Virus record (IMG/VR): IMGVR_UViG_3300021959_006017
Location: 62,001 to 126,000 of that record
DNA: 64,000 bases
Strand: one strand, 5' to 3'
Part shown: positions 2,921 through 54,755 of the stretch, one piece after another
How positions within the stretch are numbered: the first letter of the stretch is position 1
Layout of the letters: each line of letters starts with the position of its first letter
Notes under the pieces: model-generated
The model's database searches: none
The model's input: only the letters and a program-made list of their open reading frames with translations
What the model was told of the DNA's origin: nothing
Made by a program: the position numbers and the translations under genes

Positions 2921-3153
2921 TAGAACTTAAAATAGGCATATGGAATTTACTAAAAAAGATTATAGGTGGTTCTTCGCTTACACTTGCCATAGTGTATACA
3001 CTGGGGCATATATTCATTGCAATGACTTGCAATAGATTGATAACAGGAGCGGCATTAGATCTTGCCGCACTAGATGCAATAGTAGAGCCAATTATAAATG
3101 GTTTTTGGTTTTACATACTGCACAACGCATGGAAACGATTTAAAGATGATTAA
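2917..3153 (+). CDS. DUF2061-like small membrane protein
   Basis: YTLGHIFIAM...AIVEPIINGFWFYILHNAW pattern. Confidence 0.65.
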   Translation: MIELKIGIWNLLKKIIGGSSLTLAIVYTLGHIFIAMTCNRLITGAALDLAALDAIVEPIINGFWFYILHNAWKRFKDD

Positions 3154-9642: not shown

Positions 9643-9711
9643 AGTGTTTAGCCCTCTCGCTATGTTTAACTTACTCTATTAGTATAGCACCTATGTGCTG
9701 TATGTCAACCC

Positions 9712-9984
9712 CTAAAGTTCGTAAACAGTAGGAGCGTTTAGATTGTTTGCGTTACAGTATGCTTCTAGTTCTTTGCATACTGTAGCAAGGAAGCGATACT
9801 TGCGCTGTGCTTCTGCGTTGGATATCTCTCCATCGCAGTGTAGGTTCTCTGGTGATAGTTGGCTGTCCAGTGTACTAGCTAAGTCATTCACTTGTGCTTG
9901 TGTTAGTGGGAACTGCATTGGTGCAGTGTTGAACAGTGCGATCCAACGGTTGTTGTCATCGATGAATTTTTTAAGTGTGCGCAT
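9712..9984 (-). CDS. hypothetical early protein (LSPENLHCDGE motif)
   Basis: Own promoter and RBS. Confidence 0.75.
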   Translation of the reverse strand: MRTLKKFIDDNNRWIALFNTAPMQFPLTQAQVNDLASTLDSQLSPENLHCDGEISNAEAQRKYRFLATVCKELEAYCNANNLNAPTVYEL

Positions 9985-10043
9985 TGCGTTTGCCCTCGCT
10001 TTGTTTAACTTATGCTATTAGTATAGCACCATTGTAGGATTTG

Positions 10044-10220
10044 TCAACCCCTATTTACAAACTCTTCTAGTGTGCCTTCTGGGAGGAATGCTTCTAGCAC
10101 AGTCTCGTGAACCTTGGCAAACATCTCGTGGATAGCTGTAGTATCACCGTTATCAACATCTTCAACGATCTGTGTGATCACTCGTTCGACCAACTGTTCT
10201 TTGTATTCTTGCGCTGTCAT
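10044..10220 (-). CDS. hypothetical early protein, 58 aa
   Basis: Manual translation MTAQEYKEQLVERV...; TGA lies inside the next -35 box. Confidence 0.6.
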   Translation of the reverse strand: MTAQEYKEQLVERVITQIVEDVDNGDTTAIHEMFAKVHETVLEAFLPEGTLEEFVNRG

Positions 10221-10498
10221 TGGGCATACTCCTTGTTTGATTTAAGATACCATTTCTCTGTAACAGGAAGCCCAAACTCATCCTCATCTACACAGATCAC
10301 CAAACGTGTCTTTAGGACTGTGCCATAACGGTAGCCTTGCTGCCCGCCGATCTGACCATCGCCTACCCAAATCTTGTGCAGGAAGTCTTCGTTGACACCG
10401 TTGAGCGGATCATCATTGAGACTGTATTCGAACCAGTTGCCTGTGTCCTTCTCCTGGACAGCACCTATTGGATCTTTGGTGTAAGTGTAATAAGCCAT
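10217..10498 (-). CDS. hypothetical early protein
   Basis: Own promoter and RBS. Confidence 0.75.
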   Translation of the reverse strand: MAYYTYTKDPIGAVQEKDTGNWFEYSLNDDPLNGVNEDFLHKIWVGDGQIGGQQGYRYGTVLKTRLVICVDEDEFGLPVTEKWYLKSNKEYAQ

Positions 10499-10539
10499 TG
10501 GAGCCCTCCGTTTGCCTAACTGTTATATACAGTATATCT

Positions 10540-10812
10540 TCACTTGCGCTCGATGTCAACCTTTTTCTTTTGCATGAACTCTGCGATCAACTGCTGGTCA
10601 GCTTCTGAAAAGTCTTTGGGCTTAGTGCCAAAAGGTGCTCCGAAGTGCGTGAGCGCATTGCCAACATGACTTAGATCGTTGAGCTTGCGCAGGCCGTTGT
10701 CCGTTACACCTTTGAGTCCGTGCTTCTTACCGTACTCTTCTGACCAGTCCATCATCTGACGACCGATTGCGATCAGTTGCTTTTCTTTTTCGGTTGATTC
10801 ATAAAATTGCAT
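10540..10812 (-). CDS. hypothetical early protein
   Basis: GAGGG RBS, operon spacing. Confidence 0.7.
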   Translation of the reverse strand: MQFYESTEKEKQLIAIGRQMMDWSEEYGKKHGLKGVTDNGLRKLNDLSHVGNALTHFGAPFGTKPKDFSEADQQLIAEFMQKKKVDIERK

Positions 10813-10822
10813 TGTTCCCTCC

Positions 10823-11017
10823 TTAATCTAAATCACAGTCCCAATATGTGCCGTCGAACTCTGCACGGAGTCCACCTAGTGGATAATCCTTGTGTTCAAA
10901 GATAATGTAAGGAGCACTTGTAAACTCGCAGATCTTCTGTGTTACGATATTGACCTCGCTCAACGGAATGTAACGTGCTTCGCCAGTTCCGTAACCTCTG
11001 TTGTGTACCTTAATCAT
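10823..11017 (-). CDS. hypothetical early protein
   Basis: Own promoter and RBS. Confidence 0.7.
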   Translation of the reverse strand: MIKVHNRGYGTGEARYIPLSEVNIVTQKICEFTSAPYIIFEHKDYPLGGLRAEFDGTYWDCDLD

Positions 11018-11065
11018 TGGATGCCCTCCATTGCTTCTAACTATACATACACTATAGCATAGGGT

Positions 11066-11272
11066 TTAGAAGTTGTCAACCTTTTTTTCGATCTTTTCGT
11101 AGATTCGATCTACACCATCTTGCACGTCTTCGAGTACATCCGATCCAAGCGGCGCTGGCATAGTTGCCCAGTAAAGCTCTCCTGCGATCTTGTTGACGCC
11201 TTGCTTTATACCGCCGGCGTCATAGATATAATAAAGGAAGAAGCCGATTAGAATGTAGCCTATGACTCTCAT
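11066..11272 (-). CDS. small membrane-anchored hypothetical protein
   Basis: N-terminal hydrophobic helix. Confidence 0.6.
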   Translation of the reverse strand: MRVIGYILIGFFLYYIYDAGGIKQGVNKIAGELYWATMPAPLGSDVLEDVQDGVDRIYEKIEKKVDNF

Positions 11273-11273
11273 C

Positions 11274-11645
11274 TTAATACTTCTTATAATCGATAATGCC
11301 TACTACACGACCAGCACAGTTCTTTTGGATCGTGCTTTGGACGCCGTTCGCATGACGAACGATCTCTTCTGAACATACTCTTTGTGAAGCCCAAGCCGGC
11401 TCTTGAATGATCACTGTGGTGTGGTTGTTGTAGACTGGAGGAGCCTGTTGGATAATAACCTGTCCTCCGTTGTGGCCGCCGTTGTGGCCGCCGTGATGAC
11501 CGTGGTTGCGATTGCCGTAGATGTCCTGTAGGATGATCGTACCAATCACTCCTGTAAGGATACCTTGTTCACGTTCGCCCCAAGCGTGTGCCTGGGTTGT
11601 TGCTGTCATTGCGATCACTGCCGCTGTTGCTAAGATTTTTTTCAT
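11274..11645 (-). CDS. exported protein with glycine-zipper-like segment and His/Gly repeat
   Basis: Signal peptide, GILTGVIGTIIL, HGHHGGHNGGHNGG. Confidence 0.65.
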   Translation of the reverse strand: MKKILATAAVIAMTATTQAHAWGEREQGILTGVIGTIILQDIYGNRNHGHHGGHNGGHNGGQVIIQQAPPVYNNHTTVIIQEPAWASQRVCSEEIVRHANGVQSTIQKNCAGRVVGIIDYKKY

Positions 11646-11696
11646 TTGCCCTATCTCCTAACTGTTATATATAGTATAGCACCAAAAAAGAATATG

Positions 11697-12008
11697 TCAA
11701 CCCCTAATGGGGCTGATCTCTTTTGCCTGCTCCAACAAGAACTCTCTGTAGTCCTCGTCCTCAGGCAGTTTAGCATACCACTCCTCGTATGTTTGCCACT
11801 CTACTGGAAACTCCTTAGCGCCGATGCTGTTATGCATCTCCTTGGCTGCTACGAACGCAACCGCATCTTGGATGCGATCAAGTCCGGACACAATATAGTC
11901 TGTGCCGCCCTTCATCTTCCAATATGCATTGCCGGAAGCAAACTTGCCGTCCTCGCAGTGTGCGCCATAGTTTTCCAGGAACTGTGTGCTAACTACAAAC
12001 TTGATCAT
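11697..12008 (-). CDS. hypothetical early protein (TQFLENYGAH...WKMKGG)
   Basis: Own promoter and RBS; TGA inside the next -35 box. Confidence 0.75.
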   Translation of the reverse strand: MIKFVVSTQFLENYGAHCEDGKFASGNAYWKMKGGTDYIVSGLDRIQDAVAFVAAKEMHNSIGAKEFPVEWQTYEEWYAKLPEDEDYREFLLEQAKEISPIRG

Positions 12009-12084
12009 GATATTGTCCTCTTTGCCCTAACTGTTATATACAGTATATCATCTAATGCTGAGTTTGTCAACCCCTAAATGTAAA

Positions 12085-12150
12085 AAAGTTTCCGGAGGAG
12101 CGCAAGGGGGAAGTTAGAGGGCAATGTCTGCGCTACGACTCCGGAAAACT
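12085..12150 (-). ncRNA. long hairpin/terminator after the tRNA cluster with a GCCCUC-containing loop
   Basis: tttccgga...tccggaaaa outer stem, gcgca/tgcgc inner stem enclosing gagggc. Confidence 0.45.
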
Positions 12151-12227
<77 letters not shown>

Positions 12228-12232
12228 ATGCT

Positions 12233-12316
12233 TGGTACCTCCGACCGGACTCGAACCGGTACGCTCATGGCGAGGGATTTTAAGTCCCTTGTGTCTACCA
12301 ATTCCACCACGGAGGC
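12233..12316 (-). tRNA. tRNA-Leu(UAA)
   Basis: GCCTCCG acceptor, CT-TAA-AA loop, long variable arm, encoded CCA. Confidence 0.93.
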
Positions 12317-12324
12317 ATTATGTT

Positions 12325-12401
12325 TGGTGGGCCCTGCGAGACTCGAACTCGCAACCTACGGATTATGAGTCCGGTGCTCTAACCAATTGAGCTAAGAGCC
12401 C
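12325..12401 (-). tRNA. tRNA with CAU anticodon, most likely tRNA-Ile2 (elongator Met not excluded)
   Basis: GGGCTCT acceptor, CT-CAT-AA loop, A73, encoded CCA; resembles ileX-type tRNAs. Confidence 0.88.
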
Positions 12402-12412
12402 TAAGGTGGATC

Positions 12413-12604
12413 TTACGATCCGTAATACGCTAACTCCTCTTGGATGCCGGTAAAGGTCTTTTCTGCTTCTGCTTCAAAGCGAGCAACCTTCTGCTCTGCT
12501 TCTTCGATCATTCCCAGCAGGATAACATCTGCTAGGTCTGTGTTGTTGTGGATGATTCGGCGAACGCCTTCTAGTCGTTCAATAAGTTGCAGTTCGTCAT
12601 TCAT
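12413..12604 (-). CDS. hypothetical early protein
   Basis: Start reset to MNDELQ; coupled to the upstream ORF. Confidence 0.6.
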   Translation of the reverse strand: MNDELQLIERLEGVRRIIHNNTDLADVILLGMIEEAEQKVARFEAEAEKTFTGIQEELAYYGS

Positions 12605-12789
12605 TATGCTTGCTCCGAATAAATTGCTAGTCCGCCTACGATAGTTGCAAACAAACCTGCGCCTGCTACCATAAGCATCTCTCCGATAGTGTTTGCCTGA
12701 TCCATGCAAGCCCCGTCGCAGTCACCTGCTGAACCTGCCATCATCAACAAACCTGTAAAAACTAAAACTGTGCCTATTGCTGTCTTCAT
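12604..12789 (-). CDS. small two-helix membrane protein (AGDCD motif)
   Basis: Own promoter and RBS. Confidence 0.7.
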   Translation of the reverse strand: MKTAIGTVLVFTGLLMMAGSAGDCDGACMDQANTIGEMLMVAGAGLFATIVGGLAIYSEQA

Positions 12790-12857
12790 TGTCTTGCCCT
12801 CGCTTTCTAACTATACATACACTATAGCACCGAAGTGCTATAGTGTCAAGACCTTTT

Positions 12858-13163
12858 TTAATAAGCGTGAACTTTTTCTTCGACTTTGATCATCGAAGCT
12901 GGCACCTTGTAGGTGGTGTTGAAGACGCCGTTTGACATGCCACCTTGCACGACCACAGTCTTCTGGTTCACCTTTGTGACCTTCCCAACGACCTTGCCCT
13001 GACGTCCGATGAACGAAACGACATCGCCTTTGGTTACCGAACGGATGCCTTCGCGGGCCAATGCGTTCTGCTTGAGTTTGATAGCATCGTAAATCTCACG
13101 AAGCTCTTCGATATCCTGTAGAGCATAAATGGCCTCTACTGCCTTTGTTACACGATTTGACAT
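12858..13163 (-). CDS. hypothetical protein with SH3/KOW-like C-terminus
   Basis: KGDVVSF...GKVTKVNQKTVVV; start reset to MSNRV. Confidence 0.6.
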   Translation of the reverse strand: MSNRVTKAVEAIYALQDIEELREIYDAIKLKQNALAREGIRSVTKGDVVSFIGRQGKVVGKVTKVNQKTVVVQGGMSNGVFNTTYKVPASMIKVEEKVHAY

Positions 13164-13164
13164 T

Positions 13165-13401
13165 TTAATACTCCTCACCAAAGTCTGCCCATTCTTGTTC
13201 CCACGAGGGTTGACCATCGTCTTCATAGTCCTCCTCGTCTTCGTCTTCGTCGTCCATAAACCGACTGCTCAGCTCGTTGCAGTCTAGCATATCAGCAACG
13301 TCATCCGTGCTCATATACTTCAACGCCATTGTAAGCATATTCTCTGCGCTTACTACGCCGTTCTCTACTAGCTCTAATGCTTCGTCTCTTGCGTTATACA
13401 T
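13165..13401 (-). CDS. acidic hypothetical early protein
   Basis: Own promoter and RBS; ends QPSWEQEWADFGE. Confidence 0.75.
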   Translation of the reverse strand: MYNARDEALELVENGVVSAENMLTMALKYMSTDDVADMLDCNELSSRFMDDEDEDEEDYEDDGQPSWEQEWADFGEEY

Positions 13402-13453
13402 GAAGTTTGCCCTCTTCGTTGTTTCTAACTATACATACACTATAGCAAACGAT

Positions 13454-13630
13454 TTAGGATTTGTCAACCACTTTTTTCAAATATTCTGCAGAAACTGTAA
13501 AGGTCAAGCCTGTGTCGTCGCCGTCGATTGACATGATCTCAAATGAGGCGCATTGACTCTTGAGTGCGTCCTCTACTGCTTCCAACACCAGTTCCATTTG
13601 GTCTACATCTTCAAAGTATTCGGTATCCAT
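13454..13630 (-). CDS. acidic hypothetical protein
   Basis: Start reset to MDTEY, coupled to the upstream stop. Confidence 0.55.
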   Translation of the reverse strand: MDTEYFEDVDQMELVLEAVEDALKSQCASFEIMSIDGDDTGLTFTVSAEYLKKVVDKS

Positions 13631-14220
13631 TACGCATCCTCCATTTCTTCCCATTCAGCGTATTGATCACTCAAGCCGTATTCTTCGTCTATGCGTTTGA
13701 ACAGACTAGGAGCATCGTCGAGGTTGTCTTTATACTGTTCCCAAGTCTCTTGGATGCCGTCCATATGCTCTTCACCGGTCTCGCTATCCCAGAAGCCACC
13801 GAAGTCCATACCACCTTCGTGATAACTCGCTTCAATGTAGACACCGTCCATGTCTTCGCAGAATGTTTCGTATGCGGTAAGTGGTGGAGCCCATGCACTA
13901 TCGAACCAACCACTGATCGAGGCTGTGCCGTCTCCGTTGTCCGTAAACTCTAGTCCTTCTGTGGATACATCCCACTTGGTTCCCCATCGGCCCACACACC
14001 AATCATACCAATTGTCGTAGCCATCTACCACCGGCTGTTCGCCTTCGTAGTTACTGGCACCTTCTTGTGGTGTAGGTGATGTAGTTCCTTCTAGAGCTTT
14101 GGGCATAGGAACCATTGCTGATAGCAGTCCGCCATCTTCGGCTGAAGCCTCTTCCCAAAGTGTTTTGATAGTTTCAGTTGAACCCTGAATCGTGATATTG
14201 TTGTTGCACCAATTTGGCAT
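13630..14220 (-). CDS. YubB/Api92-like (DUF1281-type) ferredoxin-like domain protein
   Basis: MPNWCNN, WCVGRWGTKWD, FDSAWAPP motifs. Confidence 0.7.
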   Translation of the reverse strand: MPNWCNNNITIQGSTETIKTLWEEASAEDGGLLSAMVPMPKALEGTTSPTPQEGASNYEGEQPVVDGYDNWYDWCVGRWGTKWDVSTEGLEFTDNGDGTASISGWFDSAWAPPLTAYETFCEDMDGVYIEASYHEGGMDFGGFWDSETGEEHMDGIQETWEQYKDNLDDAPSLFKRIDEEYGLSDQYAEWEEMEDA

Positions 14221-14299
14221 ACAGCCCTCCTATTTGTTAATCGTTGCCCTTATTGTTCTTACAGTATAGCGCCGAAACGCTATACTGTCAATCTTTAAT

Positions 14300-14764
14300 T
14301 TATTCCCAGCCAATCTCTTTTAGCATTTCTGGGGTGACCTTGCTTTCAACAAAGTCGAAGATCGGAAAGCCGTTATCATCCTTCTCTCCGTGATCGTTTA
14401 CGAGCCAGTTCTGGCCATCCCATAGGTAGGCATACTCTTCCATGTCAGCGATCCAACTTGGAACATCATCGTATTCGTTGATCACAAGCTCTTCGCCACG
14501 GTCTCTGTGGTATGCGAGTGTCCAGTTGTCTGTAAGTGGAAGCTCTGGATTTTTGTAGTCTCGATCGAATGGATGCTGTTCTCCGATCTCTTCGTTTAGT
14601 GCAGAGATTGAACCTAAGCCTATCAACGCTTCAACTTTAGCATTTGAGGTATAGTTTCGACGAAGCATCTCGCCGTTGTGTGCAGGATAACCATCCCAGT
14701 GACAATATACTGAACGGATCTTACCTTCTGGAGTCTTGTATGCAATGTTTGATCTTGTAGCCAT
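14300..14764 (-). CDS. conserved-type phage hypothetical protein (MATRS...YCHWDGYP)
   Basis: Own promoter and RBS. Confidence 0.75.
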   Translation of the reverse strand: MATRSNIAYKTPEGKIRSVYCHWDGYPAHNGEMLRRNYTSNAKVEALIGLGSISALNEEIGEQHPFDRDYKNPELPLTDNWTLAYHRDRGEELVINEYDDVPSWIADMEEYAYLWDGQNWLVNDHGEKDDNGFPIFDFVESKVTPEMLKEIGWE

Positions 14765-14840
14765 TTTTGGAGCCCTCCTAGTGGCGTTGTTGTATTATGT
14801 TTATAATATAGCACAGGGTTTGATGTTTGTCAACCTCTTT

Positions 14841-15041
14841 TTATTCAAAATCCTCATCGATCACTTCAATGTTGGTGATGCTCACACCTGGGTAGGCATC
14901 GTTCTGCAAGCCTTTGAAAGCATCGTTAAAGCTCTGCTGGCTGGCTAGGAAGTTTAGGATGTCCTGCTTGTCGTAGTCCTCTGGAACTTCAAGTGTCTGA
15001 CGGATCGTTGTGACCACGTCGATGTCTACGTACTTGGTCAT
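14841..15041 (-). CDS. hypothetical protein
   Basis: Coupled ORF. Confidence 0.6.
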   Translation of the reverse strand: MTKYVDIDVVTTIRQTLEVPEDYDKQDILNFLASQQSFNDAFKGLQNDAYPGVSITNIEVIDEDFE

Positions 15042-15244
15042 TAGTATTCCTCCCCATAGTCTGCCATTTCCTGCTTTGCTGCAAAGTCTAACAAGTCCAA
15101 AGCCAACTGCTCTGCTTGCTTGCGTGTCAACTGTATGTATTGCCCAAAGTCTGTGCTAACCTGTACACAAGTGCCTTTGTCTTCACCACCGTAGTAGCGT
15201 GTTAACAATACAGCCTTGTCTCTTGTCTTTAAATCAGTAGCCAT
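15041..15244 (-). CDS. hypothetical early protein
   Basis: Own promoter and RBS. Confidence 0.7.
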   Translation of the reverse strand: MATDLKTRDKAVLLTRYYGGEDKGTCVQVSTDFGQYIQLTRKQAEQLALDLLDFAAKQEMADYGEEY

Positions 15245-15319
15245 TGTGTGTGCCCTCTATTGCTTAACTGTTATATACAGTATATCATCTCTGTGTGTGT
15301 TTGTCAACCTCTTTTTTAG

Positions 15320-15475
15320 AAAAAAACGCCCCCGTAGGATGAGGGCGGTCCTACGAGGGCTAGGTGAAGAAGAGCGTGAGGGCTTGCATCTTCTTCTGGT
15401 TGCAGCACTTGGATGAGGGCGGTCCAAGTACTACGTAAACTGTGTTGCGGAACGTGAGGGCTTATGCTCTACGCA
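15320..15475 (-). ncRNA. putative four-hairpin small RNA with GCCCUC loops
   Basis: Stems gtagga/tcctac, gaagaaga/tcttcttc, acttgga/tccaagt plus a weaker fourth stem, each enclosing gagggc on +; T-run at the minus-strand 3' end. Confidence 0.65.
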
Positions 15476-16472
15476 TCACAGTATTCTCAGCCATTGCTTC
15501 CCACTTGAGTGGAAATGCTTTGGCCAAGTCGGCGACTTTTAGTACTGTTCTTAGAGACAGTTCACGTAGTCGCTTCTTATTGATGTCAATGAAGTCGACG
15601 ATGTCGTCCTTTACTTCATCTGACATCTGATACTCATCGAGCATACCGTCTGAAACGATTTGCTTGATGCGTAACATCTTCTCGCGCTCTGTGTCGATAG
15701 TCAAATCAACATAGTGACAGCGAGATTCCAAAGCCATTAAGTGCTCTTTGATCTTGCCTTTGGCTTTGTCAAACTTTAGGTTCGTGATAAAGATCGCGGA
15801 ACCTTTGAACTCGAATGAATCCGGCACACCTTCGTTGCGCAGTTTGAATGAATCTGTGTTCCAGTGAATGCGTCTTGTCTTCTTGGAATCCAATGCAGCT
15901 TTCAGGATGTTCAGGCTAAGCTCGTCTGCGAAGATTGAGTCACAGTCATCAAACACGATAACGTTATCTTTGTCTGCATACTTGTAGAGCTTTACATACA
16001 AACCGATCGCACTCATTGCGCCTTTGACGACCTCATACTTCTTCAGCTTGCTATCGCCTGCGATATCTGCAAGCAGGTCATGCTTGCCTAGTACTTTCTC
16101 TACACCAAACGATTTACCAACACCTGGAGGTCCTGATACGATCATAGCTCGCACATCGCCCTTCTTGGTGGCTTTGGTCATCTCCTCTAGCATGTCAAAG
16201 CGATCACGCATACGGTCCATAATGTCCTGATCACTCTCTTCTCGCACTGTAGTGGCTACGGACTCGCCTACTAGTTCGTAAGCATCATTGCCTGTACACT
16301 TGATCTTAATATTGCGATCCGGAAATCCTGCGACCGCAACACCATCGACCGTAACGTAGCCACCACTTGCACCTACCTTAAACTCTTCTACAAGTGGAAA
16401 GACCATACCTGTCAGGTCTACGTCTTTGCCTCGGATCTTGTAAGTACCCTCTAAAATCTTAACTTTTTTCAT
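15462..16472 (-). CDS. AAA+ ATPase
   Basis: Walker A SGPPGVGKS, Walker B VIVFDDCD, ESRC Arg finger; start reset to MKKVK (GAGGGC RBS). Confidence 0.85.
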   Translation of the reverse strand: MKKVKILEGTYKIRGKDVDLTGMVFPLVEEFKVGASGGYVTVDGVAVAGFPDRNIKIKCTGNDAYELVGESVATTVREESDQDIMDRMRDRFDMLEEMTKATKKGDVRAMIVSGPPGVGKSFGVEKVLGKHDLLADIAGDSKLKKYEVVKGAMSAIGLYVKLYKYADKDNVIVFDDCDSIFADELSLNILKAALDSKKTRRIHWNTDSFKLRNEGVPDSFEFKGSAIFITNLKFDKAKGKIKEHLMALESRCHYVDLTIDTEREKMLRIKQIVSDGMLDEYQMSDEVKDDIVDFIDINKKRLRELSLRTVLKVADLAKAFPLKWEAMAENTVMRRA

Positions 16473-16533
16473 GTTCGCCCTCCAGCGTCTGTGTGTGTTA
16501 TTATGTATACTATACATTCGCTCTACGTAGATG

Positions 16534-16710
16534 TCAACCAAAAAGTAGAACAAATAGTAAAATAAATCCTAGGATGGTTGCAGCATATGTGAAGACATAT
16601 GTTAACGATCCTGCTACCTGCTCGCCAAACGTCACTTCAGTGTTACAGTTGTGACATTTAGTTGCAAAGAACTCTTTGTTGTGGCTCTGGCAATACGGAC
16701 ATAAACTCAT
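16534..16710 (-). CDS. Zn-ribbon plus TM small protein
   Basis: Manual translation MSLCPYC...CHNC, hydrophobic C-terminus; TGA inside a -35 box. Confidence 0.6.
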   Translation of the reverse strand: MSLCPYCQSHNKEFFATKCHNCNTEVTFGEQVAGSLTYVFTYAATILGFILLFVLLFG

Positions 16711-16719
16711 ATCAGCCTC

Positions 16720-16881
16720 CTACAGAAAAAACCAAACGATGAAAGCAAAGCCTACCAACCATGGTGCCAGCTGCCATCCAATACGCAATGCTCCTACGAA
16801 CACTGCACCTACAATACCGATTAGCAAACCTAATACGACTAGGACTGAAATGATGTCCCACATTGTTGTTAACTGATCCAT
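16720..16881 (-). CDS. small membrane protein (53 aa)
   Basis: Manual translation, two hydrophobic helices. Confidence 0.55.
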   Translation of the reverse strand: MDQLTTMWDIISVLVVLGLLIGIVGAVFVGALRIGWQLAPWLVGFAFIVWFFL

Positions 16882-17042
16882 TATCGACGCACCACTTCTA
16901 CTAGTCTACGTGCCCGGCCTGTGTAGGCACTTGCACTCACACCTGCCATCTGACAACCTTTATCCATCGCACTCGACTCTGACAGGGCCATTACGGTTCC
17001 TTGGAACTGTCCGTCATAATAAACAAAATATTGATGAAACAT
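16881..17042 (-). CDS. hypothetical protein (53 aa)
   Basis: Manual translation MFHQYFVYYDG...; own promoter. Confidence 0.55.
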   Translation of the reverse strand: MFHQYFVYYDGQFQGTVMALSESSAMDKGCQMAGVSASAYTGRARRLVEVVRR

Positions 17043-17088
17043 TTTCTTACCCTCGTTTTCTAACTGTTATATACAGTGTACGATCTCT

Positions 17089-17283
17089 TTAGCGTCTTGT
17101 CAACCGATATTTTTCTTTTAAGAAAGAAATATTTTCTTTCACGTACTCACGGAATGAATGCGGCTGAACTTGTCCGAAGCTGTGATACTCGTCTCTGTTC
17201 TCAAAGTACTTGTTCCAACAGAAGCCCGCAAAGGGCTTCTTCTTGTATGGCTTTGGATTATTAACTTCCATTACATGCTCCAA
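17089..17283 (-). CDS. hypothetical protein
   Basis: Coupled ORF. Confidence 0.6.
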   Translation of the reverse strand: MEHVMEVNNPKPYKKKPFAGFCWNKYFENRDEYHSFGQVQPHSFREYVKENISFLKEKYRLTRR

Positions 17284-17600
17284 TAGGCTTCGCTGCTGGG
17301 TGACATATAGTTAGGAGTGTTAACCCCTTCGTACCAAGTCTTTGTGTTGTCCATTAGGCTGGACTTTTTAACCTGCTTCTCAATATGTTTGTGGAAGTAG
17401 CTGGCCTCTGCAATCGCATAACGGAACAGAGCATAGTTCGGATCCGTAGGCAGTAGACCTTCTGCCTTTGCAATGCGTGTAAGACCTGCTTTCGCTGCTG
17501 CCATAGTCTTGTAGCTCTGGCGGTGGTCCGGACGGGCAACACCATTACGATCGGGCTTGCCGATAATGTAAGTGCTGCTCTGTTCGTAAATGTAAAACAT
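17271..17600 (-). CDS. hypothetical early protein (ends NTPNYMSPSSEAYWSM)
   Basis: Own promoter and RBS. Confidence 0.75.
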   Translation of the reverse strand: MFYIYEQSSTYIIGKPDRNGVARPDHRQSYKTMAAAKAGLTRIAKAEGLLPTDPNYALFRYAIAEASYFHKHIEKQVKKSSLMDNTKTWYEGVNTPNYMSPSSEAYWSM

Positions 17601-17658
17601 GGAATGCCCTCCGTTGTTTCTAACTATACTTATAGTGTATGCTCACTCAGAGCATTTG

Positions 17659-17835
17659 TCAACCGAAATCTGTAGCTCGAAGTTCGATTTCTTCTTCTAC
17701 GTCCATCCACAGTTCGTAGACTTTGCTGGTGAGTTTCTTCTTGACACTCTCCTGTAGAGGGAGCTGCATGATGAGCTCATCGACCTCGTCGAGTTTGTTG
17801 TCAAGAGTTTCAAGGATTGATTCTGTGGTTACCAT
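17659..17835 (-). CDS. acidic helical hypothetical protein (58 aa)
   Basis: Manual translation MVTTESILETLDNK...; GGAG RBS; TGA inside a -35 box. Confidence 0.6.
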   Translation of the reverse strand: MVTTESILETLDNKLDEVDELIMQLPLQESVKKKLTSKVYELWMDVEEEIELRATDFG

Positions 17836-17880
17836 TGGGGTCTCCTATTAGCGGGGCCTATTACATTATAACTTTTTGCA

Positions 17881-18048
17881 CTAGCTTTGCCATGCTAGTA
17901 CTTTGTTGTTTTTAACTGTTAGCACACGCATTTCCGTGTAGCCGTCGCGCATAGTAAAAACTGCGCTGTACACAGCCGCGCCGCCGTCTAGCATGTTAAG
18001 CATTTGCAAGTTTGTGTACTTGCCGTTTTTTACTTTTAGTGTTTGCAT
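17881..18048 (-). CDS. hypothetical early protein (55 aa, no Pro)
   Basis: Manual translation MQTLKVKNGKY...; promoter and RBS. Confidence 0.65.
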   Translation of the reverse strand: MQTLKVKNGKYTNLQMLNMLDGGAAVYSAVFTMRDGYTEMRVLTVKNNKVLAWQS

Positions 18049-18119
18049 ATAAAGCCCTCTATGCTGTTAAGTGTTAGTGTGTATAATAGCACACACTAAC
18101 ACATTTGTCAACTACTTTT

Positions 18120-18467
18120 TTAGTTACTTAAACATGCGTAGTCAAGCAAGTTAACGTTTTGCATTGCTGTGTTAGCAACACAATTTTCGTACAAGCTGCT
18201 TTCGTCGTAGTATGTAATGTTGTTTGCAAAAACTTCCATTACAGTGCTAAGTGCTACGTAGTCGTCGCAGTCTGCAAAACTTGCGTAAACTTCCGCTAGT
18301 TGTGCATAAATGTTTGCACTGTTAATAAAGTAGCTTGCACTTGTGCAGTCTGCTTCCATTAGCAGTACGTTGTTAAATGCGTTTGTTAGTACAGCGTATA
18401 CTGTATCCGCATGTACGCTGTCTACGTTTGTTGTTTGTGTTTGTGTAATAGTTTTTAGTGCTTGCAT
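18120..18467 (-). CDS. hypothetical early protein (no Pro)
   Basis: Promoter and RBS. Confidence 0.7.
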   Translation of the reverse strand: MQALKTITQTQTTNVDSVHADTVYAVLTNAFNNVLLMEADCTSASYFINSANIYAQLAEVYASFADCDDYVALSTVMEVFANNITYYDESSLYENCVANTAMQNVNLLDYACLSN

Positions 18468-18537
18468 AACTGCCCTCCGTATGCTTTAGTGTATGTGTAC
18501 ATAATAGCACACATACACACAGTTGTCAAGTGTTTTT

Positions 18538-18783
18538 TTATATGCTGTTTATTAAACTTGTAGCAATTTGCTTTGTGCTTTTGTTTTTGCTGTACAAGTT
18601 GTACAGTGCAGGAAGTAGTTTGTACTGTTGCAGCACTTGTGCGCTTACGTTGCGCTTTACTGCTTGTACTGAGTTTGCACTTACGTTTTGTGCTTTTGTT
18701 TTACTGCAATGCTTAAACATTGTGTTGCTTGTGCTGCAATAAGTTAAAAACACATTACGTGCAAGTTGTTTTGTAGTTAACAT
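18538..18783 (-). CDS. basic hypothetical early protein
   Basis: Promoter and RBS. Confidence 0.65.
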   Translation of the reverse strand: MLTTKQLARNVFLTYCSTSNTMFKHCSKTKAQNVSANSVQAVKRNVSAQVLQQYKLLPALYNLYSKNKSTKQIATSLINSI

Positions 18784-18872
18784 ACGTAGCCCTCGTTTTT
18801 GTTAAACTGTACATACAGTATAACACAAGTTGCACACAATGCAAGCGAAAAATGCACTGTGTGCAAACTTTT

Positions 18873-19142
18873 TTAAACTAGCGGCACTAATATGTCTTTT
18901 ACACTGTCTATAATATTATGTGCGCAGTTGTCAGTAGCAAAGCCCTCCTCCGCTGCAAAGTCAATACTGCTGCTACACATAATAGTGTCTGTAAGCATAT
19001 TAATATTATATTGCGTAAACACTTGTAGTAGCTGCTGTGCTGTTTGCACAGTTGTTGCGACAACAACATTATTTACATGCACAACAATGCATGCGTTTTC
19101 AGCAGTTAAAAATACGTAGTTGTTTGTTTTTGTAGTTTGCAT
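18873..19142 (-). CDS. hypothetical early protein, paralog A (SSxDFAxEEGF motif)
   Basis: Aligns by eye with 19256-19486. Confidence 0.75.
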   Translation of the reverse strand: MQTTKTNNYVFLTAENACIVVHVNNVVVATTVQTAQQLLQVFTQYNINMLTDTIMCSSSIDFAAEEGFATDNCAHNIIDSVKDILVPLV

Positions 19143-19255
19143 ATTAAAGCCCTTATGCTGTTTACGTTATGTATACACTATAGCACACACAGCAGCAACT
19201 GTCAAGCGAAAAATGCACTGTGCGCAAACTTTTTTTAAACGAGACGAAAAGGACG

Positions 19256-19486
19256 CTACAACAGTTGCAGTGCGTCCTCTATTAATGCATGCGCAGCATC
19301 ATCGCTGCTAAAGCCTTCTTCACTTGCAAAGTCTACGTCACTGCTGTGCATTAGCCTGTCTGCTAGTGTAACGTTGTGCTTGCGTAGCAGTGCTGCTAAG
19401 TCTGCTGCACTATTAGCCCAGCCTACTTGCTGTTGTTCAATGCTTACGCTGATGCCCGCTTGTTCTGCGTTAAAAAATACAAACAT
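19256..19486 (-). CDS. hypothetical early protein, paralog B (SSxDFAxEEGF motif)
   Basis: Aligns by eye with 18873-19142. Confidence 0.75.
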   Translation of the reverse strand: MFVFFNAEQAGISVSIEQQQVGWANSAADLAALLRKHNVTLADRLMHSSDVDFASEEGFSSDDAAHALIEDALQLL

Positions 19487-19579
19487 GTTAGCCCTCTTGC
19501 TTTGTTAACTTATACATACACTATACTACACACACTAGCAGTTGTCAACTAAAAAATGCTAGTGTGTGCAAGTTTTTTA

Positions 19580-19843
19580 TTAGCCGTCGTACTTAACGCC
19601 TACCAAACGCAAGTAGCGTCCGTTGTTTGTATTGTGTACTCGCTCACAGCCAGTTACAATCTTAAGCCAAGTGCATTCGCCTTCTGTAAACTTGTCTCCA
19701 AGTATTGCGTAGCACAAGTTGCGTCTGTCTGCAACATCCTCTTTGTTCTTTTGCACAACGTTCGTCCAAGTGCGCCACACACCTGTGTTTTTGCCTTTAA
19801 TCATTGCGTTTAAAATGCTGCGTGTTTGTTTTGTGTTAAGCAT
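19580..19843 (-). CDS. hypothetical early protein
   Basis: Start reset to MLNTKQ (GAGGG RBS). Confidence 0.65.
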   Translation of the reverse strand: MLNTKQTRSILNAMIKGKNTGVWRTWTNVVQKNKEDVADRRNLCYAILGDKFTEGECTWLKIVTGCERVHNTNNGRYLRLVGVKYDG

Positions 19844-20005
19844 GTTTCCCTCATTGCTTGTTACGTTATACATTTAATATAACACAGTTGCACATAAATG
19901 CAAGTGCAACTGTGTATAGTTTAGCTATACTTTAGTATAGCAGCTCTCATAGCAGCGGGGCCAGCTGTAGTGTAGTACTACAGCACCCAGTTGTCAAGTG
20001 TTTTT

Positions 20006-20149
20006 TTAATAATTTTCTGCATCTGCCTCTAAGCAAGTTCCATCTTCGCCTAGCCAAAAGTATTTGTCAAACGCTTTAACAACAACACCTTCAATGTAGT
20101 TGCCTTCTTCCCATTCGCGTTCTTCTGTAGTAATAACTTCAACTTGCAT
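20006..20149 (-). CDS. hypothetical early protein (47 aa)
   Basis: Manual translation MQVEVITTEEREWEEG...; promoter and RBS. Confidence 0.6.
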   Translation of the reverse strand: MQVEVITTEEREWEEGNYIEGVVVKAFDKYFWLGEDGTCLEADAENY

Positions 20150-20243
20150 ATTTGCCCTCATGCTTGTTACGTTTTAGTATGTGTATACTATAGCACAAGC
20201 AGCGCACTTTGTCAAGTACTAAATGCGCTGCTTGCAAATTAAT

Positions 20244-20705
20244 TTATGCGTCCTCAAGCACTATGTTATGTGCTGTAAGCATTTCCTCCGCTATTGCATT
20301 AGCGTCATAGCTCGCACGTCCCACATCCTGCATGCCCCACTCACTAGTGCATACGTCCTCCGCTGCTGCTGTGCTAAAGCCGTGCTGCTGTAGTATGCTG
20401 TGCAGCGTGTCGTCAAAACAATGTTCCCAGTAAAACTGTCCCATTGTTTCCGTGTTGTTGTTAGTGTCACTAGTGTCACGCATTAGCATGCTAGTGTTGT
20501 GTACGTAGTTGCTGTCGTCTTCCGCAGCCCAGTTAACAGCTAAGTCCCCGTAGCAGTCTGCATCCGCATACAGCGTAATGCTTTCCACTTTGCGTCCATT
20601 AACTTGCAAGTTTTGCTGTGCTAAGTTAATTTCCAGCACTACGCTGTTGTCTGCGCTTTCAAGTGTTGTTACTGCTTTAACTTTAGTGTTGTTTACGTTT
20701 TGCAT
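20244..20705 (-). CDS. acidic hypothetical early protein (153 aa, no Pro)
   Basis: Promoter and RBS; SEWGMQ motif. Confidence 0.75.
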   Translation of the reverse strand: MQNVNNTKVKAVTTLESADNSVVLEINLAQQNLQVNGRKVESITLYADADCYGDLAVNWAAEDDSNYVHNTSMLMRDTSDTNNNTETMGQFYWEHCFDDTLHSILQQHGFSTAAAEDVCTSEWGMQDVGRASYDANAIAEEMLTAHNIVLEDA

Positions 20706-20773
20706 TTAAAGCCCTCCAAATGCTTGTTTAAGTATACGTACACTATAGCACAAGTGTACGTATTTGTCAAGTA

Positions 20774-20953
20774 TTATTTTACGTTACAGTATGCTTTGTA
20801 ACTGTTAAACATTTTTTCAATGTTAGCTGCTTTAGTGCAGTTGCCTTGCCTGCTGTCTGCTACTAAACGCATACAGTTTTTTTGCAACTGTGCAAAAGTT
20901 GTTACTTGTTGTTTGTAGTACGCAGGCTTTGCGTTTTGTGCGTTATATGCCAT
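20774..20953 (-). CDS. hypothetical early protein (59 aa)
   Basis: Manual translation MAYNAQNAK...; own promoter. Confidence 0.6.
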   Translation of the reverse strand: MAYNAQNAKPAYYKQQVTTFAQLQKNCMRLVADSRQGNCTKAANIEKMFNSYKAYCNVK

Positions 20954-21033
20954 TTTGTAGTGCCCCCTACTGTTTAACTGTGCATACAGTATAACACAAT
21001 ATGCACAGTTGTCAAGTGTTTTTTTAAATTATT

Positions 21034-21246
21034 TTAGTAGCCCCAGTTGTTGTCTACTACGTCATGCACTTCAATACGTGCGTTCTCGTCTAGTTTAAAA
21101 AACGCATTGTCGTATTCTGCGTAGTCTGCGTTAATAGCTGCTAGTTGCTCTACAGCGTCTTCGTAGCTTGCACACACTGCTGCATTTTCGTATGCATATT
21201 CGTCGTCGCCTGTGCCTTGCAGTTGTAGTATGTTTACTTGTAGCAT
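21034..21246 (-). CDS. acidic hypothetical early protein
   Basis: Start reset to MLQVNIL (GAGGGC RBS). Confidence 0.7.
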   Translation of the reverse strand: MLQVNILQLQGTGDDEYAYENAAVCASYEDAVEQLAAINADYAEYDNAFFKLDENARIEVHDVVDNNWGY

Positions 21247-21337
21247 AGTTTGCCCTCTTTGCTTTATTAACTGTACACACAGTATAACCTCACTTGTGCG
21301 TTCTGTCAAGTTCTTTTTGTTCGCCTGTTCTTTCCGT

Positions 21338-25466: not shown

Positions 25467-25874
25467 CCACCCTATCTTTTTACCTAACTTAGTACGCTTT
25501 TCGTGTTCTGCAACTGTACCTGGAAATCTCCAAGCCCAGATGGCTACCAGCAACATGAAACCACCGCTCCAGGCGACTGCTTTGATATTGCCAGTGGTGA
25601 ACCAAAGGAATGCTAACGAGGACGACATTACTATCACCATCGCATACTTGCCTTTGGTAGGAAATACTCTTTTCTGTACCCAGTTAGTTAGGAATGGGCC
25701 AAAGTATTTGTGATTGTATAACCAATCGTGCATCTTCTTGTTGCTCTTTGCAAAACAATATGCTGCAAACACAAGGAAGATACTAAATGGAATACCCGGA
25801 ACGACTACGCCGATGTATGCCATGCCTAAAGATAGGAAGCCAAGTCCCATCCACACGTATTTTTTAATATTCAT
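25458..25874 (-). CDS. YbaN (DUF454) family membrane protein
   Basis: GVVVPGIP...[23 protein letters not shown]. Confidence 0.85.
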
Positions 25875-52445: not shown

Positions 52446-52658
52446 ATGACGTATTTTGAACTCAAAGAAGCTAATCGCTTTTACTGGCTAGTCAAAGGTC
52501 AACTCATTCCTGAATCTTGGAACGAAAAAGATATTCGCGACACATATGAATCTTACTTTAGACGCTTGTGGGGCAACCACGAAAGAGCAGTATATGGCGA
52601 GTTAGGATTTGAAGCAGCCTGGGCAAAAACGCCAAGCAAAAAAGCGGTTGACATCTAA
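52446..52658 (+). CDS. hypothetical protein
   Basis: TAAATA 5 nt upstream. Confidence 0.6.
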   Translation: MTYFELKEANRFYWLVKGQLIPESWNEKDIRDTYESYFRRLWGNHERAVYGELGFEAAWAKTPSKKAVDI

Positions 52659-52680
52659 AGTATAAACTGTTATAAATAAC

Positions 52681-52920: not shown

Positions 52921-52923
52921 GCT

Positions 52924-54735: not shown

Positions 54736-54755
54736 CATTTCAAAGGAGAGGGCAA

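Follow-up and report, generated by a model that had tools for sequence, protein, structure and literature searches.

Why should the RNA downstream of an early phage gene carry, several times over, the exact complement of the ribosome-binding site (RBS) of that same gene and of many of its neighbours? This question is raised by a 64,000-nucleotide stretch of DNA (hereafter the window), positions 62,001 to 126,000 of the IMG/VR record IMGVR_UViG_3300021959_006017, a 236.7-kb contig from an uncultured giant phage. A sequence-only reading of the window had pointed to three clear stem-loops and a weaker fourth at 15320-15475, directly after the stop codon of an AAA ATPase gene, and had proposed that they form a cuckoo-like anti-Shine-Dalgarno (anti-SD) sRNA acting as an early-to-late switch. 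We therefore asked whether the structure is real, whether its match to the early RBS is more than coincidence, and what kind of element it may be.

A four-hairpin array after the ATPase gene

Inspection of the sequence and a repeat search revealed four inverted repeats with repeated loop blocks. In line with this, RNA folding of the minus strand of positions 15318-15490 gave four hairpins, spanning 15482-15320, at -67.9 kcal/mol, against -40.9 +/- 3.8 for shuffled sequences (z -7.1; none of 200 shuffles was as good). Each loop displays GCCCUC, and the last hairpin is a G+C-rich, U-tailed intrinsic terminator. The array and its surroundings are organised as follows.

15439-15482, minus strand: hairpin 1, the weaker one, with outer stem ACUGUGAUGCG/CGCAACACAGU and its 5' arm inside the last ATPase codons; the apical part holds the stop codon UAA (15464-15462) followed directly by GCCCUC (15461-15456), and the loop holds AAGCCCUCAC.
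15403-15434, minus strand: hairpin 2, a 12-bp stem including two U.G pairs, with the 9-nt loop CCGCCCUCA (15422-15414).
15366-15396, minus strand: hairpin 3, stem GAAGAAGA/UCUUCUUC plus GC/GC, loop AAGCCCUCAC (15385-15376).
15328-15360, minus strand: hairpin 4, a 12-bp G+C-rich stem with loop CCGCCCUCA (15348-15340) and an extra, fifth GCCCUC in its 5' arm; this is the intrinsic terminator stem.
15320-15326, minus strand: the U7 tract that completes the intrinsic terminator and marks the predicted 3' end of the RNA.
15462-16472, minus strand: the AAA+ ATPase gene (336 aa from the ATG at 16472; T4 NrdC.10-like, phrog_1250, function unknown), of which the array is the 3'UTR.
16476-16482, minus strand: the RBS of the ATPase, GAGGGCG, 4 nt before the ATG and a 7-nt complement of the CGCCCUC in the loops of hairpins 2 and 4.
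16509-16537, minus strand: a sigma-70-type early promoter (TTGACA-17-TATAGT) that would drive the ATPase mRNA and its 3'UTR.
15252-15307, minus strand: the next early cassette, directly after the terminator, with promoter TTGACA-17-TATACT (15307-15279), the conserved leader and the RBS GAGGGC (15257-15252) of a 67-aa gene (15244-15041); this is a PeSL-type terminator/promoter/SD module.
9651-21257, minus strand: the early region holding 18 GAGGGC-type RBSs (putative targets), with the 5' base of each motif at 9656, 9997, 10508, 11028, 12801, 13414, 14229, 14777, 15257, 16482, 17611, 18059, 18477, 18794, 19496, 20159, 20716 and 21257.
12078-12152, minus strand: a second, single hairpin with the motif, the terminator after tRNA-Arg, with a 22-nt loop that holds UUGCCCUCU and UUCCCCCU; the hairpin is followed by a U-run.

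The structural observation made from the sequence alone is thus confirmed, with the difference that the element starts about 7 nt further 5' than had been given, because the stem of hairpin 1 reaches into the coding sequence. A promoter scan found no promoter-like site between the ATPase promoter and the array, so that the element is the 3'UTR of the ATPase mRNA rather than a separate sRNA gene. Coding potential was rejected, since the only ORF is a 56-aa TTG frame (15257-15427) and the array varies in hairpin number and length between relatives. A function of the inverted motifs as plus-strand RBSs was likewise rejected, because no start codon with an ORF follows any of them.

The loops mirror a class-specific early RBS

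We then examined the target side. GAGGGC occurs 31 times in the window against 10.3 +/- 3.6 expected. Of the 20 minus-strand copies within 9.6-22.4 kb, 18 lie 3-8 nt before an ATG that opens an ORF of at least 47 aa, the ATPase included, which is exactly the count of 18 early genes made from the sequence alone, whereas the motif precedes only 1 of 61 plus-strand genes. Counted as AGGGC, this RBS is present in 20 of 42 early ORFs and 1 of 61 plus-strand ORFs. The genes carrying it are promoter-proximal, while promoter-distal early genes use GGAGG-type sites. Conversely, GCCCUC on the transcribed strand of the early region occurs only in the array (5 copies within 120 nt) and once in the terminator after the tRNA cluster; the other terminators of the early region lack it. 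The early region as a whole is built from repeated PeSL-type modules (stem-loop terminator, sigma-70 early promoter, SD and start codon) around small ORFs, with 21 minus-strand promoters showing 11 of 12 consensus matches and a conserved leader and RBS.

The earlier claim that the terminal GC of GAGGGC exceeds what SD pairing needs agrees with the canonical 3' tail of 16S rRNA. Bare duplexes of early leaders are predicted at -13 to -18 kcal/mol with the phage's own loops against -6.3 with a canonical 16S tail, whereas a late-type leader gives -3.5 to -5.3 with the loops. Accessibility-corrected pairing has a median of -8.8 kcal/mol for AGGGC leaders, -3.3 for other early leaders and -2.3 for late leaders.

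Conservation and co-variation in related phages

A DNA similarity search of 50,697 deposited phage genomes, in near and distant modes, gave no match, and the lineage has no cultured member in that collection; the ATPase is at most 49% identical to that of PA5oct and has no informative match in PDB sequences, NCBIfam or the ESM Atlas beyond being a phage AAA+ protein. By contrast, about 40 related uncultured phage contigs have 2-6 such hairpins at the same place, with covarying stems and a constant loop, most often UGCCCU, the complement of the RBS core AGGGCA. The stop-codon hairpin with GCCCUC in its loop is seen in most of the relatives belonging to the clade of the ATPase family that we term clade A, the hairpin type of hairpin 3 ('...GCCCUCACGCUCU...') in nearly all of them, and the terminal hairpin with its U-run in most relatives.

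In 38 unique clade A relatives, 96 of 106 GCCCUC motifs lie in predicted loops. Of the post-stop GCCCU pentamers, 66% lie in hairpin loops, against 12-13% of the same pentamer elsewhere or of random sites, and GCCCUC occurs 130 times in the 310 nt after the ATPase stop against 42 times in the other 424 kb of the loci. Covariation across related genomes, which had been named beforehand as a check, supported the hairpins: 12 of 12 stem pairs carry compensatory changes, 96.8% of cells are paired and the loop UGCCCU is invariant, while for the clade B hairpin 8 of 8 lower-stem pairs carry such changes. Furthermore, sense hairpins are more stable than antisense ones (p 0.004), and a conserved U.G pair next to the loop-closing G-C pair exists only in the sense RNA. 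On the target side, the RBS consensus (n=285) is G(.81)AGGGCA(.76), exactly mirrored by the commonest loop, UGCCCU(C).

In other clades of the same ATPase family both partners differ yet still match. Clade A pairs GAGGGCA with UGCCCUC; clades B and D pair the RBS GGAGCGAA with the loop UUCGCUCC; clade C pairs GGAGUGAGAAC with UUCUCACU and UCUCACUC; and clade F pairs UGUUGAAAGGCU with AGCCUUUCAACA over 10-12 nt, with further cases in the locus L132 and the L309 group (numbers preceded by L denote individual loci in our set). The cross-clade matrix is diagonal, with 7.0-11 nt and 4.5-7 six-mer matches with the own clade, against 5.3-6.4 nt and 0.4-2.2 across clades. The complementarity is therefore under selection.

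Not every comparison followed this pattern. Within clade A the bases flanking the core do not co-vary locus by locus: neither the base 5' of GCCCU against the base 3' of AGGGC, nor GCCCUU loops against AAGGGC RBSs, gave a significant association, and no correlation was evident by eye between the number of loops and the number of AGGGC RBSs per locus. L025, L050 and L074 (mostly GAGGAGCA) and L027 (GGAGA) keep GCCCUC loops although few of their early genes carry AGGGC; in two clade A relatives the loops are kept although most early genes use another RBS. Clade H has AAAGGGCACAA at the ATPase, an AGGGCA RBS, but no array nearby (no GCCCU hairpin within reach). Many other ATPase relatives, including PA5oct and the T4-like phage X20, have only a plain terminator after the homologous gene.

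Sequence searches aimed at the array itself added little. A covariance model of the single UGCCCU hairpin carries too little information, its hits in the window having E of at least 0.38 and including ordinary palindromes. A partial scan of IMG/VR for three spaced GCCCTC copies returned only chance hits in unrelated, mostly G+C-rich contigs. The 16-mer GGATGTGCCCTCGTCC finds the family only directly after the ATPase (in L074, behind a duplicated ATPase 3' end), its other hits lying inside unrelated, mostly G+C-rich contigs. The element does not behave as a REP/MITE-like dispersed palindrome, since the stems differ between copies and motif-bearing hairpins occur only after the ATPase and once after the tRNAs.

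What the array may do

[quoted passage not shown] In this view, the four loops base-pair with a private, extended SD element, (G)AGGGC(A/U/G), of the ATPase gene and, in this phage, of 17 other promoter-proximal early genes built from the same promoter-leader-RBS cassette. Pairing would cover the SD core plus 2-3 extra bases that the ribosome does not use, and would therefore be stronger than SD:anti-SD pairing and selective for early messages. Precedents for anti-SD loops and for 3'UTR-to-RBS pairing are found in the cuckoo/CcsR RNAs and in icaR, respectively. The expected result is occlusion of the 30S binding site, possibly followed by decay: a negative feedback that would tighten as this stable RNA (full-length, or a processed 3' fragment) accumulates, damping early-gene translation while leaving late genes with ordinary AGGAG sites untouched. 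The analysis itself establishes the structure, the conservation of the loops, the covariation of the stems, the class-specific RBS, and the complementarity with its co-variation between clades; co-transcription with the ATPase, accumulation of a discrete RNA or its processing, repression as the outcome, action in trans on many early mRNAs and a role in timing are inferred, in the absence of any RNA data.

The interpretation offered by the sequence-only reading is accordingly supported only in part. The loops are complementary to a class-specific early RBS, and the multi-hairpin, same-loop-motif, 3'UTR architecture does resemble that of cuckoo/CcsR RNAs, but the element is not a member of that family, and a collective shut-off of all early cassettes, like an early-to-late switch, remains an inference. 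In clade C only the ATPase RBS matches the 3'UTR, which argues for an ATPase-specific rather than a global role, and in clade F and L132, where only the ATPase RBS was compared, the 3'UTR matches it too; the conserved target may therefore be the ATPase mRNA itself. We also note that a 6-nt loop cannot pair fully without opening its closing pairs, that in clade B 20 nt of the hairpin apex are invariant, which is more than pairing explains, and that one RNA with 4-5 loops would have to outnumber the transcripts of about 20 strong promoters to act globally.

Of the alternatives, cis-only autoregulation is the strongest, although we consider it unlikely. Here the loops would fold back onto the RBS of the same mRNA and set ATPase output or mRNA half-life, as in the 5'-3' UTR pairing of Staphylococcus aureus icaR (PMC3868564), and the match to other early genes would be a by-product of the shared cassette. 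Besides clades C and F and L132, this view is favoured by the ATPase RBS being AGGGC-type in about 27 of 32 clade A loci, even where other early genes differ, as in L025; by the two CGCCCUC loops of the window fitting best the ATPase RBS GAGGGCG, a variant unique to the ATPase; and by the array always staying on the ATPase transcription unit, even in clade D where small genes intervene. However, three to five redundant loops are more than one RBS needs, loops such as AAGCCCUC fit other early genes (GAGGGCUU) better than the ATPase, the motif is shared in clades A and B by 10-20 genes within 12 kb, which makes trans contacts hard to avoid, and a second motif-bearing hairpin sits after the tRNA cluster, away from the ATPase.

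The remaining possibilities seem improbable. The same complementarity could serve protection or activation, with the loops shielding the early RBS from a RegB-like SD-cutting endoribonuclease or another decay route, or tethering mRNAs, so that early expression is prolonged; T4-type phages do inactivate early mRNAs by cutting inside an SD followed by an A-rich tract (GG*AGRAYARAA; PMC3014915), and the early leaders here are likewise an SD plus an A-rich tail, but no RegB-like gene was identified, albeit without a systematic search, and pairing over the SD normally blocks initiation. The hairpins could instead be a sponge or landing pad for an RNA-binding protein (with Csr/Rsm-type logic, or the ATPase itself), or simply an exonuclease barrier and terminator, with incidental complementarity. 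The tight linkage to one protein gene, the clear terminator and the conservation of the apices beyond the complementary core (UG[UGCCCU]CG and GGA..UCC in clade A, 20 invariant nt in clade B) would fit, yet this does not explain why four or five unrelated loop sequences in different clades are each the complement of that clade's RBS, and the loops contain no GGA-type CsrA motif, GGA occurring only in stems, paired with UCC. Least likely is a DNA-level feature, in which inverted copies of the RBS cassette flanking the ATPase gene act as recombination or inversion sites, as remnants of PeSL shuffling, or as cruciform or origin-type elements. PeSL cassettes are recombination hot spots in T4-type phages (PMC4122927), and at the DNA level the feature is a set of short inverted repeats around one gene, but only the 6-12 nt of the RBS is repeated, it sits in loops of hairpins with covarying stems and sense-strand-only G.U pairs, and no inverted orientation of the ATPase was seen in about 150 loci.

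More tentatively, and with somewhat less than even odds, the evidence leaves room for a broader possibility: that a whole group of uncultured T4-like and jumbo phages gives its early genes a private, extended SD and encodes, in the 3'UTR of one early gene, a multi-loop 'orthogonal anti-SD' RNA that out-competes the ribosome for exactly those messages and, as an RNA-only counterpart of T4 RegB, times the shut-off of early translation, with SD extension and loop having co-evolved into at least four different sequence pairs. How large lytic phages switch off their early programme is known in molecular detail almost only for T4, where the proteins RegB and RegA do it. Here the specificity would lie in an RNA, with a class of phage genes tagged by an SD with a 2-4 nt private extension and a structured RNA carrying the matching extended anti-SD in several loops. 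This would add a phage example to the short list of anti-SD RNAs and a natural example of orthogonal SD recognition, and would also explain why the SD of PeSL-type early cassettes is so strictly conserved. The between-clade co-variation, with four or more different motif pairs at one syntenic site, is unusually strong comparative evidence for an RNA-RNA contact in uncultured viruses, and gives a simple rule for finding such regulators in metagenomes: compare each gene's RBS with its own 3'UTR.

Relation to known systems

The closest resemblance is to the cuckoo/CcsR/alpha-r14 sRNAs of Alphaproteobacteria (Rfam RF02344; PMC4615179, PMC8034643), which also have 2-4 adjacent hairpins, each loop carrying the same C-rich anti-SD-like motif, on highly variable stems with compensatory changes; CcsR1-4 lie in the 3'UTR of an upstream protein gene, are co-transcribed with it and end in a terminator. 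The Rfam ar14 model aligns full length to 15441-15323 of the window, but at 31.3 bits against a gathering threshold of 58.8; a gathering-threshold scan of the whole window found nothing at this site, and 11 relatives gave no ar14 hit. Moreover, the loop motif is GCCCUC in the window and mostly UGCCCU in relatives, not CCUCCUCCC, the upstream gene is a phage AAA ATPase rather than the DUF1127 gene of an alphaproteobacterial chromosome, and the motif matches the phage's own private RBS rather than general SDs.

In the S. aureus icaR mRNA (PMC3868564), a C-rich anti-SD motif in the 3'UTR is likewise complementary to the SD of the same mRNA, with blocked initiation and decay as the expected outcome, but icaR is a bacterial regulator mRNA with a single motif (UCCCCUG), whereas here there are several loops, a phage early gene and potential targets on about 18 mRNAs. 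S. aureus RNAIII hairpins and RsaE/RoxS (PMC6158497) also use unpaired C-rich loops of stable hairpins, several per RNA, as seeds against G-rich RBSs; these are independent bacterial sRNA genes with UCCC seeds that target host regulons, without sequence relation to the array. T4 RegB endoribonuclease and RegA repressor (PMC3014915) share the proposed task, class-specific inactivation of early mRNAs at their translation initiation regions through recognition of an SD plus its 3' context, but are proteins, whereas the determinant here would be an RNA and no cleavage is implied. The PeSL (promoter-early stem-loop) cassettes of T4-type phages (PMC2839356, PMC4122927) fit the target side, but were described as recombination and regulatory cassettes; stem-loops complementary to the cassette's SD are not mentioned in the passages searched of one PeSL paper (PMC4122927), and ordinary PeSL stem-loops in this window lack the motif. 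Finally, the c4 antisense RNA of P1/P7 is a phage-encoded, processed, structured RNA whose loops pair with sites that include an RBS on a transcript of the same operon, but it controls one target (icd/ant) in a temperate phage immunity circuit and lies upstream of that target rather than in a 3'UTR.

Organisation of the early region

The window forms part of a 236.7-kb IMG/VR phage contig, and searches among deposited phage genomes identified no relative at the DNA level. Positions about 8.5-23 kb carry small ORFs on the minus strand, and a promoter scan detected at least 21 near-consensus sigma-70 promoters (TTGACA-17-TATAMT) on that strand, each of which is followed by a conserved A-rich leader and an RBS. 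This is the terminator/promoter/SD cassette organisation described as PeSLs in T4-type phages (PMC4122927). Two palindromic sequences (19529-19568 and 20195-20235, minus strand), which were recovered as weak hits of the hairpin model, overlap the -35/spacer region of two of the early promoters and could be PeSL stem-loops or operator-like sites.

One of the few conserved genes in this region encodes an AAA+ ATPase. It belongs to phrog_1250, is homologous to T4-type NrdC.10 and to a PA5oct protein, and has no known function. Elsewhere in the window, a number of auxiliary-type genes were identified, as listed below.

3098-4117, plus strand: a carbamoyltransferase
25864-27060, minus strand: a class I/II aminotransferase
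42708-44318, plus strand: a protein with an Mtd_N domain plus a pectate-lyase-like domain (possible tail fibre or diversity-generating target)
44778-47081, plus strand: an NrdA ribonucleotide reductase

A hairpin array follows the ATPase stop codon

We then examined the 150 nt that follow the ATPase stop codon. The minus-strand RNA spanning 15490-15318 folds into four hairpins at -67.9 kcal/mol, as compared with -40.9 +/- 3.8 for dinucleotide shuffles. The presence of a multi-hairpin element at this position, as proposed in the sequence-only reading, is therefore confirmed. The features of the locus are as follows.

15462-16472, minus strand: the AAA+ ATPase gene
16537-16509, minus strand: the ATPase promoter
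15482-15439, minus strand: hairpin 1, which begins inside the last codons and whose apical part holds the stop codon and, directly after it, GCCCUC
15434-15403, minus strand: hairpin 2, loop CCGCCCUCA
15396-15366, minus strand: hairpin 3, loop AAGCCCUCAC
15360-15328, minus strand: hairpin 4, loop CCGCCCUCA, followed by U7 and forming an intrinsic terminator

GAGGGC is three-fold over-represented in the window (31 copies against 10.3), and 18 of the 20 minus-strand copies in 9.6-22.4 kb lie 3-8 nt before an ATG that opens an ORF. With a simple gene call, AGGGC precedes 20 of 42 early ORFs but only 1 of 61 plus-strand ORFs, which use AGGAG/GGAG. The single plus-strand gene with the early-type RBS (54748-54756, AAAGGAGAGGGCAA-ATG, opening the ORF 54756-55241) has a predicted pairing energy with the loops of -9.3 kcal/mol, and could be a late-region target or a chance match. 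Within the early region, the motif belongs to promoter-proximal genes, whereas promoter-distal genes use GGAGG-type sites. On the transcribed strand of the early region, GCCCUC occurs only in this array and once in the terminator loop after the tRNA cluster. In the latter case (12078-12401, minus strand), a tRNA-Met/Leu/Arg cluster is followed by a terminator hairpin whose 22-nt loop holds UUGCCCUCU and UUCCCCCU, thereby providing a second, single anti-RBS-like loop away from the ATPase.

Conservation of the array among close ATPase relatives

A search with the ATPase returned 45 loci at 67-84% protein identity (clade A), nearly all of which carry 2-6 hairpins with GCCCUC directly after the stop codon. 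On the sense strand of these loci, GCCCUC occurs 130 times in the 310 nt after the stop and 42 times in the remaining 424 kb, and 96 of 106 motifs fall in predicted loops. In addition, 66% of post-stop GCCCU lie in hairpin loops with stems of at least 5 bp, as compared with 12-13% for the pentamer elsewhere or for random sites. The commonest loop is the hexaloop UGCCCU (41 cases), closed by G-C on top of a conserved U.G pair, with CCGCCCUCA and AUGCCCUC following in frequency. In L074 (2189-2904) and in L050, two loci of the same sequence type, about 700 nt are inserted between the ATPase and the array, with a duplicated copy of the ATPase 3' end just before the array, which may be the footprint of a mobile insertion.

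In 13 terminal hairpins, all 12 stem pairs show compensatory changes, 96.8% of cells are paired and the loop is invariant, whereas slid-partner controls give 37-52% pairing; RNAalifold independently predicts the same structure. The hairpins are also more stable as sense RNA than as antisense RNA, and the conserved U.G would be a C.A mismatch on the other strand. The functional molecule is therefore the minus-strand RNA. As the promoter scan found no promoter between the ATPase promoter and the array, we infer that the array is the 3'UTR of the ATPase message.

Complementarity between loops and early ribosome-binding sites

Across clade A, the RBS consensus (285 sites) is G(81%)-A-G-G-G-C-A(76%)-A(71%) and the loop consensus is U(54%)-G-C-C-C-U-C(93%), with UGCCCU being the exact complement of AGGGCA. 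In some relatives the RBS is AAGGGCA, TAGGGCA or GGGGCA, without a GAGG core, and the constant part is therefore AGGGCA rather than a canonical SD. Some clade A early leaders (those of loci L006, L014, L019 and L039; for example L006:7260-7330) carry two AGGGCAA copies, one right after the -10 box near the likely transcript start and one at the RBS, such that a multi-loop RNA would have two pairing sites per leader.

Accessibility-corrected pairing energies between the window's RNA and leaders have medians of -8.8 kcal/mol for AGGGC leaders, -3.3 for other early leaders and -2.3 for plus-strand genes, although this comparison is partly circular because the groups were defined by the motif. Bare duplexes of clade A leaders with their loops are -13 to -18 kcal/mol, against -6.3 with a canonical 16S 3' tail, which is assumed here since the host is unknown. 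An AGGAG-type late leader, by contrast, gives -8.0 with the 16S tail and only -3.5 to -5.3 with the loops. As regards the host, Rfam calls a permuted (two-piece) alpha-type tmRNA at 52644-52928 on the plus strand (77 and 63 bits, above threshold), which ARAGORN does not report; a phage-borne tmRNA could hint at an alphaproteobacterial host.

Loop and RBS co-vary between clades

The strongest evidence came from a profile search for more distant ATPase relatives, which revealed that the same position holds different hairpins in other clades, and that the early RBS differs in the matching way. In clade B (12 loci), the RBS is AGGAGCGAA (58 of 190 ORF upstreams) and two hairpins carry the loop AUUCGCUCC, the second being a U-tailed terminator; their lower stems covary (8 of 8 pairs). 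In seven loci of this clade (L105, L106, L107, L109, L111, L121 and L125), the array is followed, 100-250 nt after the ATPase stop, by conserved G-rich boxes (GGTCGGGG(C/T)ATA...) in place of sigma-70 promoters, and these may be promoters for a phage-encoded RNA polymerase. Clade D has the same RBS (44 of 207), and one hairpin with the same apex (CCG-AUUCGCUCC-CGG) plus a terminator lies 0.8-0.9 kb downstream, behind one or two inserted small genes. In clade C (6 loci), only the ATPase carries AAAAAGGAGUGAGAACCA-AUG, and its 3'UTR has one hairpin loop with UUCUCACU or GUUCUCAC and a second, 26-nt loop with UCUCACUC(C) and CUCCUCU. In clade F, the ATPase RBS region GCUGUUGAAAGGCU is matched by a single-stranded AGCCUUUCAACA (10-12 nt) just before the terminator, and the match is kept in five relatives that differ elsewhere. 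Further cases are the locus L132 (AGGAGCCUAGACA against UUGUCUAGCUCCU) and the L309 group (GAAAGGG against ACCCUUUC).

In a cross-clade matrix, an ATPase RBS finds on average 7.0-11 nt of complementarity and 4.5-7 six-mer matches in the 3' region of its own clade, as compared with 5.3-6.4 nt and 0.4-2.2 matches in other clades. By our estimate, a 10-12-nt match between a 24-nt and a 220-nt segment is expected about 0.003 times per locus. This pattern is what selection for RNA-RNA pairing predicts, and it is not explained by a protein-binding or purely structural role.

We note, however, that the correspondence has exceptions. Within clade A, flanking bases do not co-vary locus by locus. The loci L025, L050 and L074 mostly use GAGGAGCA and L027 uses GGAGA, and yet they keep GCCCUC-type loops, of which L027 has only two. 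Clade H has AAAGGGCACAA at the ATPase but no GCCCU hairpin within the sequence examined. Many further relatives, including PA5oct and the T4-like X20, have only a plain terminator or an abutting gene. In Pseudomonas phage PA5oct (L077:3266-3310), the small hairpin after the ATPase homologue does have an arm, UGCUACU, complementary to that gene's own RBS region AGUAGCA, but this lies in a stem and so may be chance. Since in clade C the matching RBS is unique to the ATPase, the feature shared by all positive clades is complementarity between the ATPase RBS and the 3' end of its own transcription unit, whereas in clades A and B that RBS is the cassette RBS of 10-20 neighbouring early genes. The apex of the clade B hairpin, CCAACGAUUCGCUCCCGGYAA (an alignment of L106:3249-3303 and 7 others), is invariant at 20 of its 21 positions, far more than the 8-nt complement needs, and its internal loop CCAA/GYAA may be a protein-binding or tertiary-contact site; together with the conserved GGA..UCC and UG..CG closing pairs in clade A, which likewise exceed what pairing needs, this hints at an additional partner or a structural requirement.

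A possible anti-RBS mechanism and its alternatives

Taken as a whole, we favour a model, to which we assign a probability of about 0.6, in which the ATPase mRNA is made from an early sigma-70 promoter and ends at hairpin 4. In this view, its 3'UTR, either as part of the mRNA or as a processed and therefore more stable fragment, would present 4-5 copies of an extended anti-SD, which would pair with the SD plus its private 3' extension on the ATPase leader and on the other cassette leaders. The paired region lies 3-8 nt upstream of the AUG, inside the 30S footprint. Initiation would be blocked on early messages only. Because hairpin 1 includes the stop codon, terminating ribosomes should keep its loop closed off, and we infer from this a possible link between ATPase translation and loop availability. 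The analyses presented here establish the structure, the conserved loops, the covarying stems, the class-specific RBS, and the complementarity with its co-variation between clades; on the other hand, co-transcription with the ATPase, accumulation or processing of the RNA, repression as the outcome, action in trans on many early mRNAs and any role in timing are inferences. We consider it likely that loop-RBS pairing is the selected property, while action in trans on many genes seems about as probable as not. The sequence-only reading, which proposed an RNA that collectively shuts off or titrates translation of the early cassettes as an early-to-late switch, is supported in part: the anti-RBS complementarity is strongly supported, while the global switch is unproven and may be centred on the ATPase.

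Among the alternatives, cis-only autoregulation, although unlikely in our view, is the most plausible. A protein sponge or stabiliser is improbable. Protective pairing is similarly doubtful, and a DNA-level repeat appears the least likely of these possibilities.

Relationship to known systems

In logic, the element is close to the icaR 3'UTR anti-SD (PMC3868564) and to C-rich-loop sRNAs of Staphylococcus, and in its proposed task it parallels T4 RegB/RegA (PMC3014915). Literature searches for phage-encoded sRNAs acting on early-gene ribosome-binding sites, in a collection without most subscription-journal papers, listed no paper describing such an RNA. In architecture, it is closest to the cuckoo/CcsR/ar14 RNAs, which have adjacent hairpins, one loop motif and compensated stems, and of which CcsR1-4 also originate from the 3'UTR of an upstream gene (PMC4615179, PMC8034643). 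The Rfam ar14 model aligns end to end with the window's hairpins 2-4, but at 31.3 bits against a threshold of 58.8, and it finds nothing in 11 relatives. The motif, the neighbouring gene and the replicon all differ. The element would therefore work like a cuckoo RNA but is not a member of that family.
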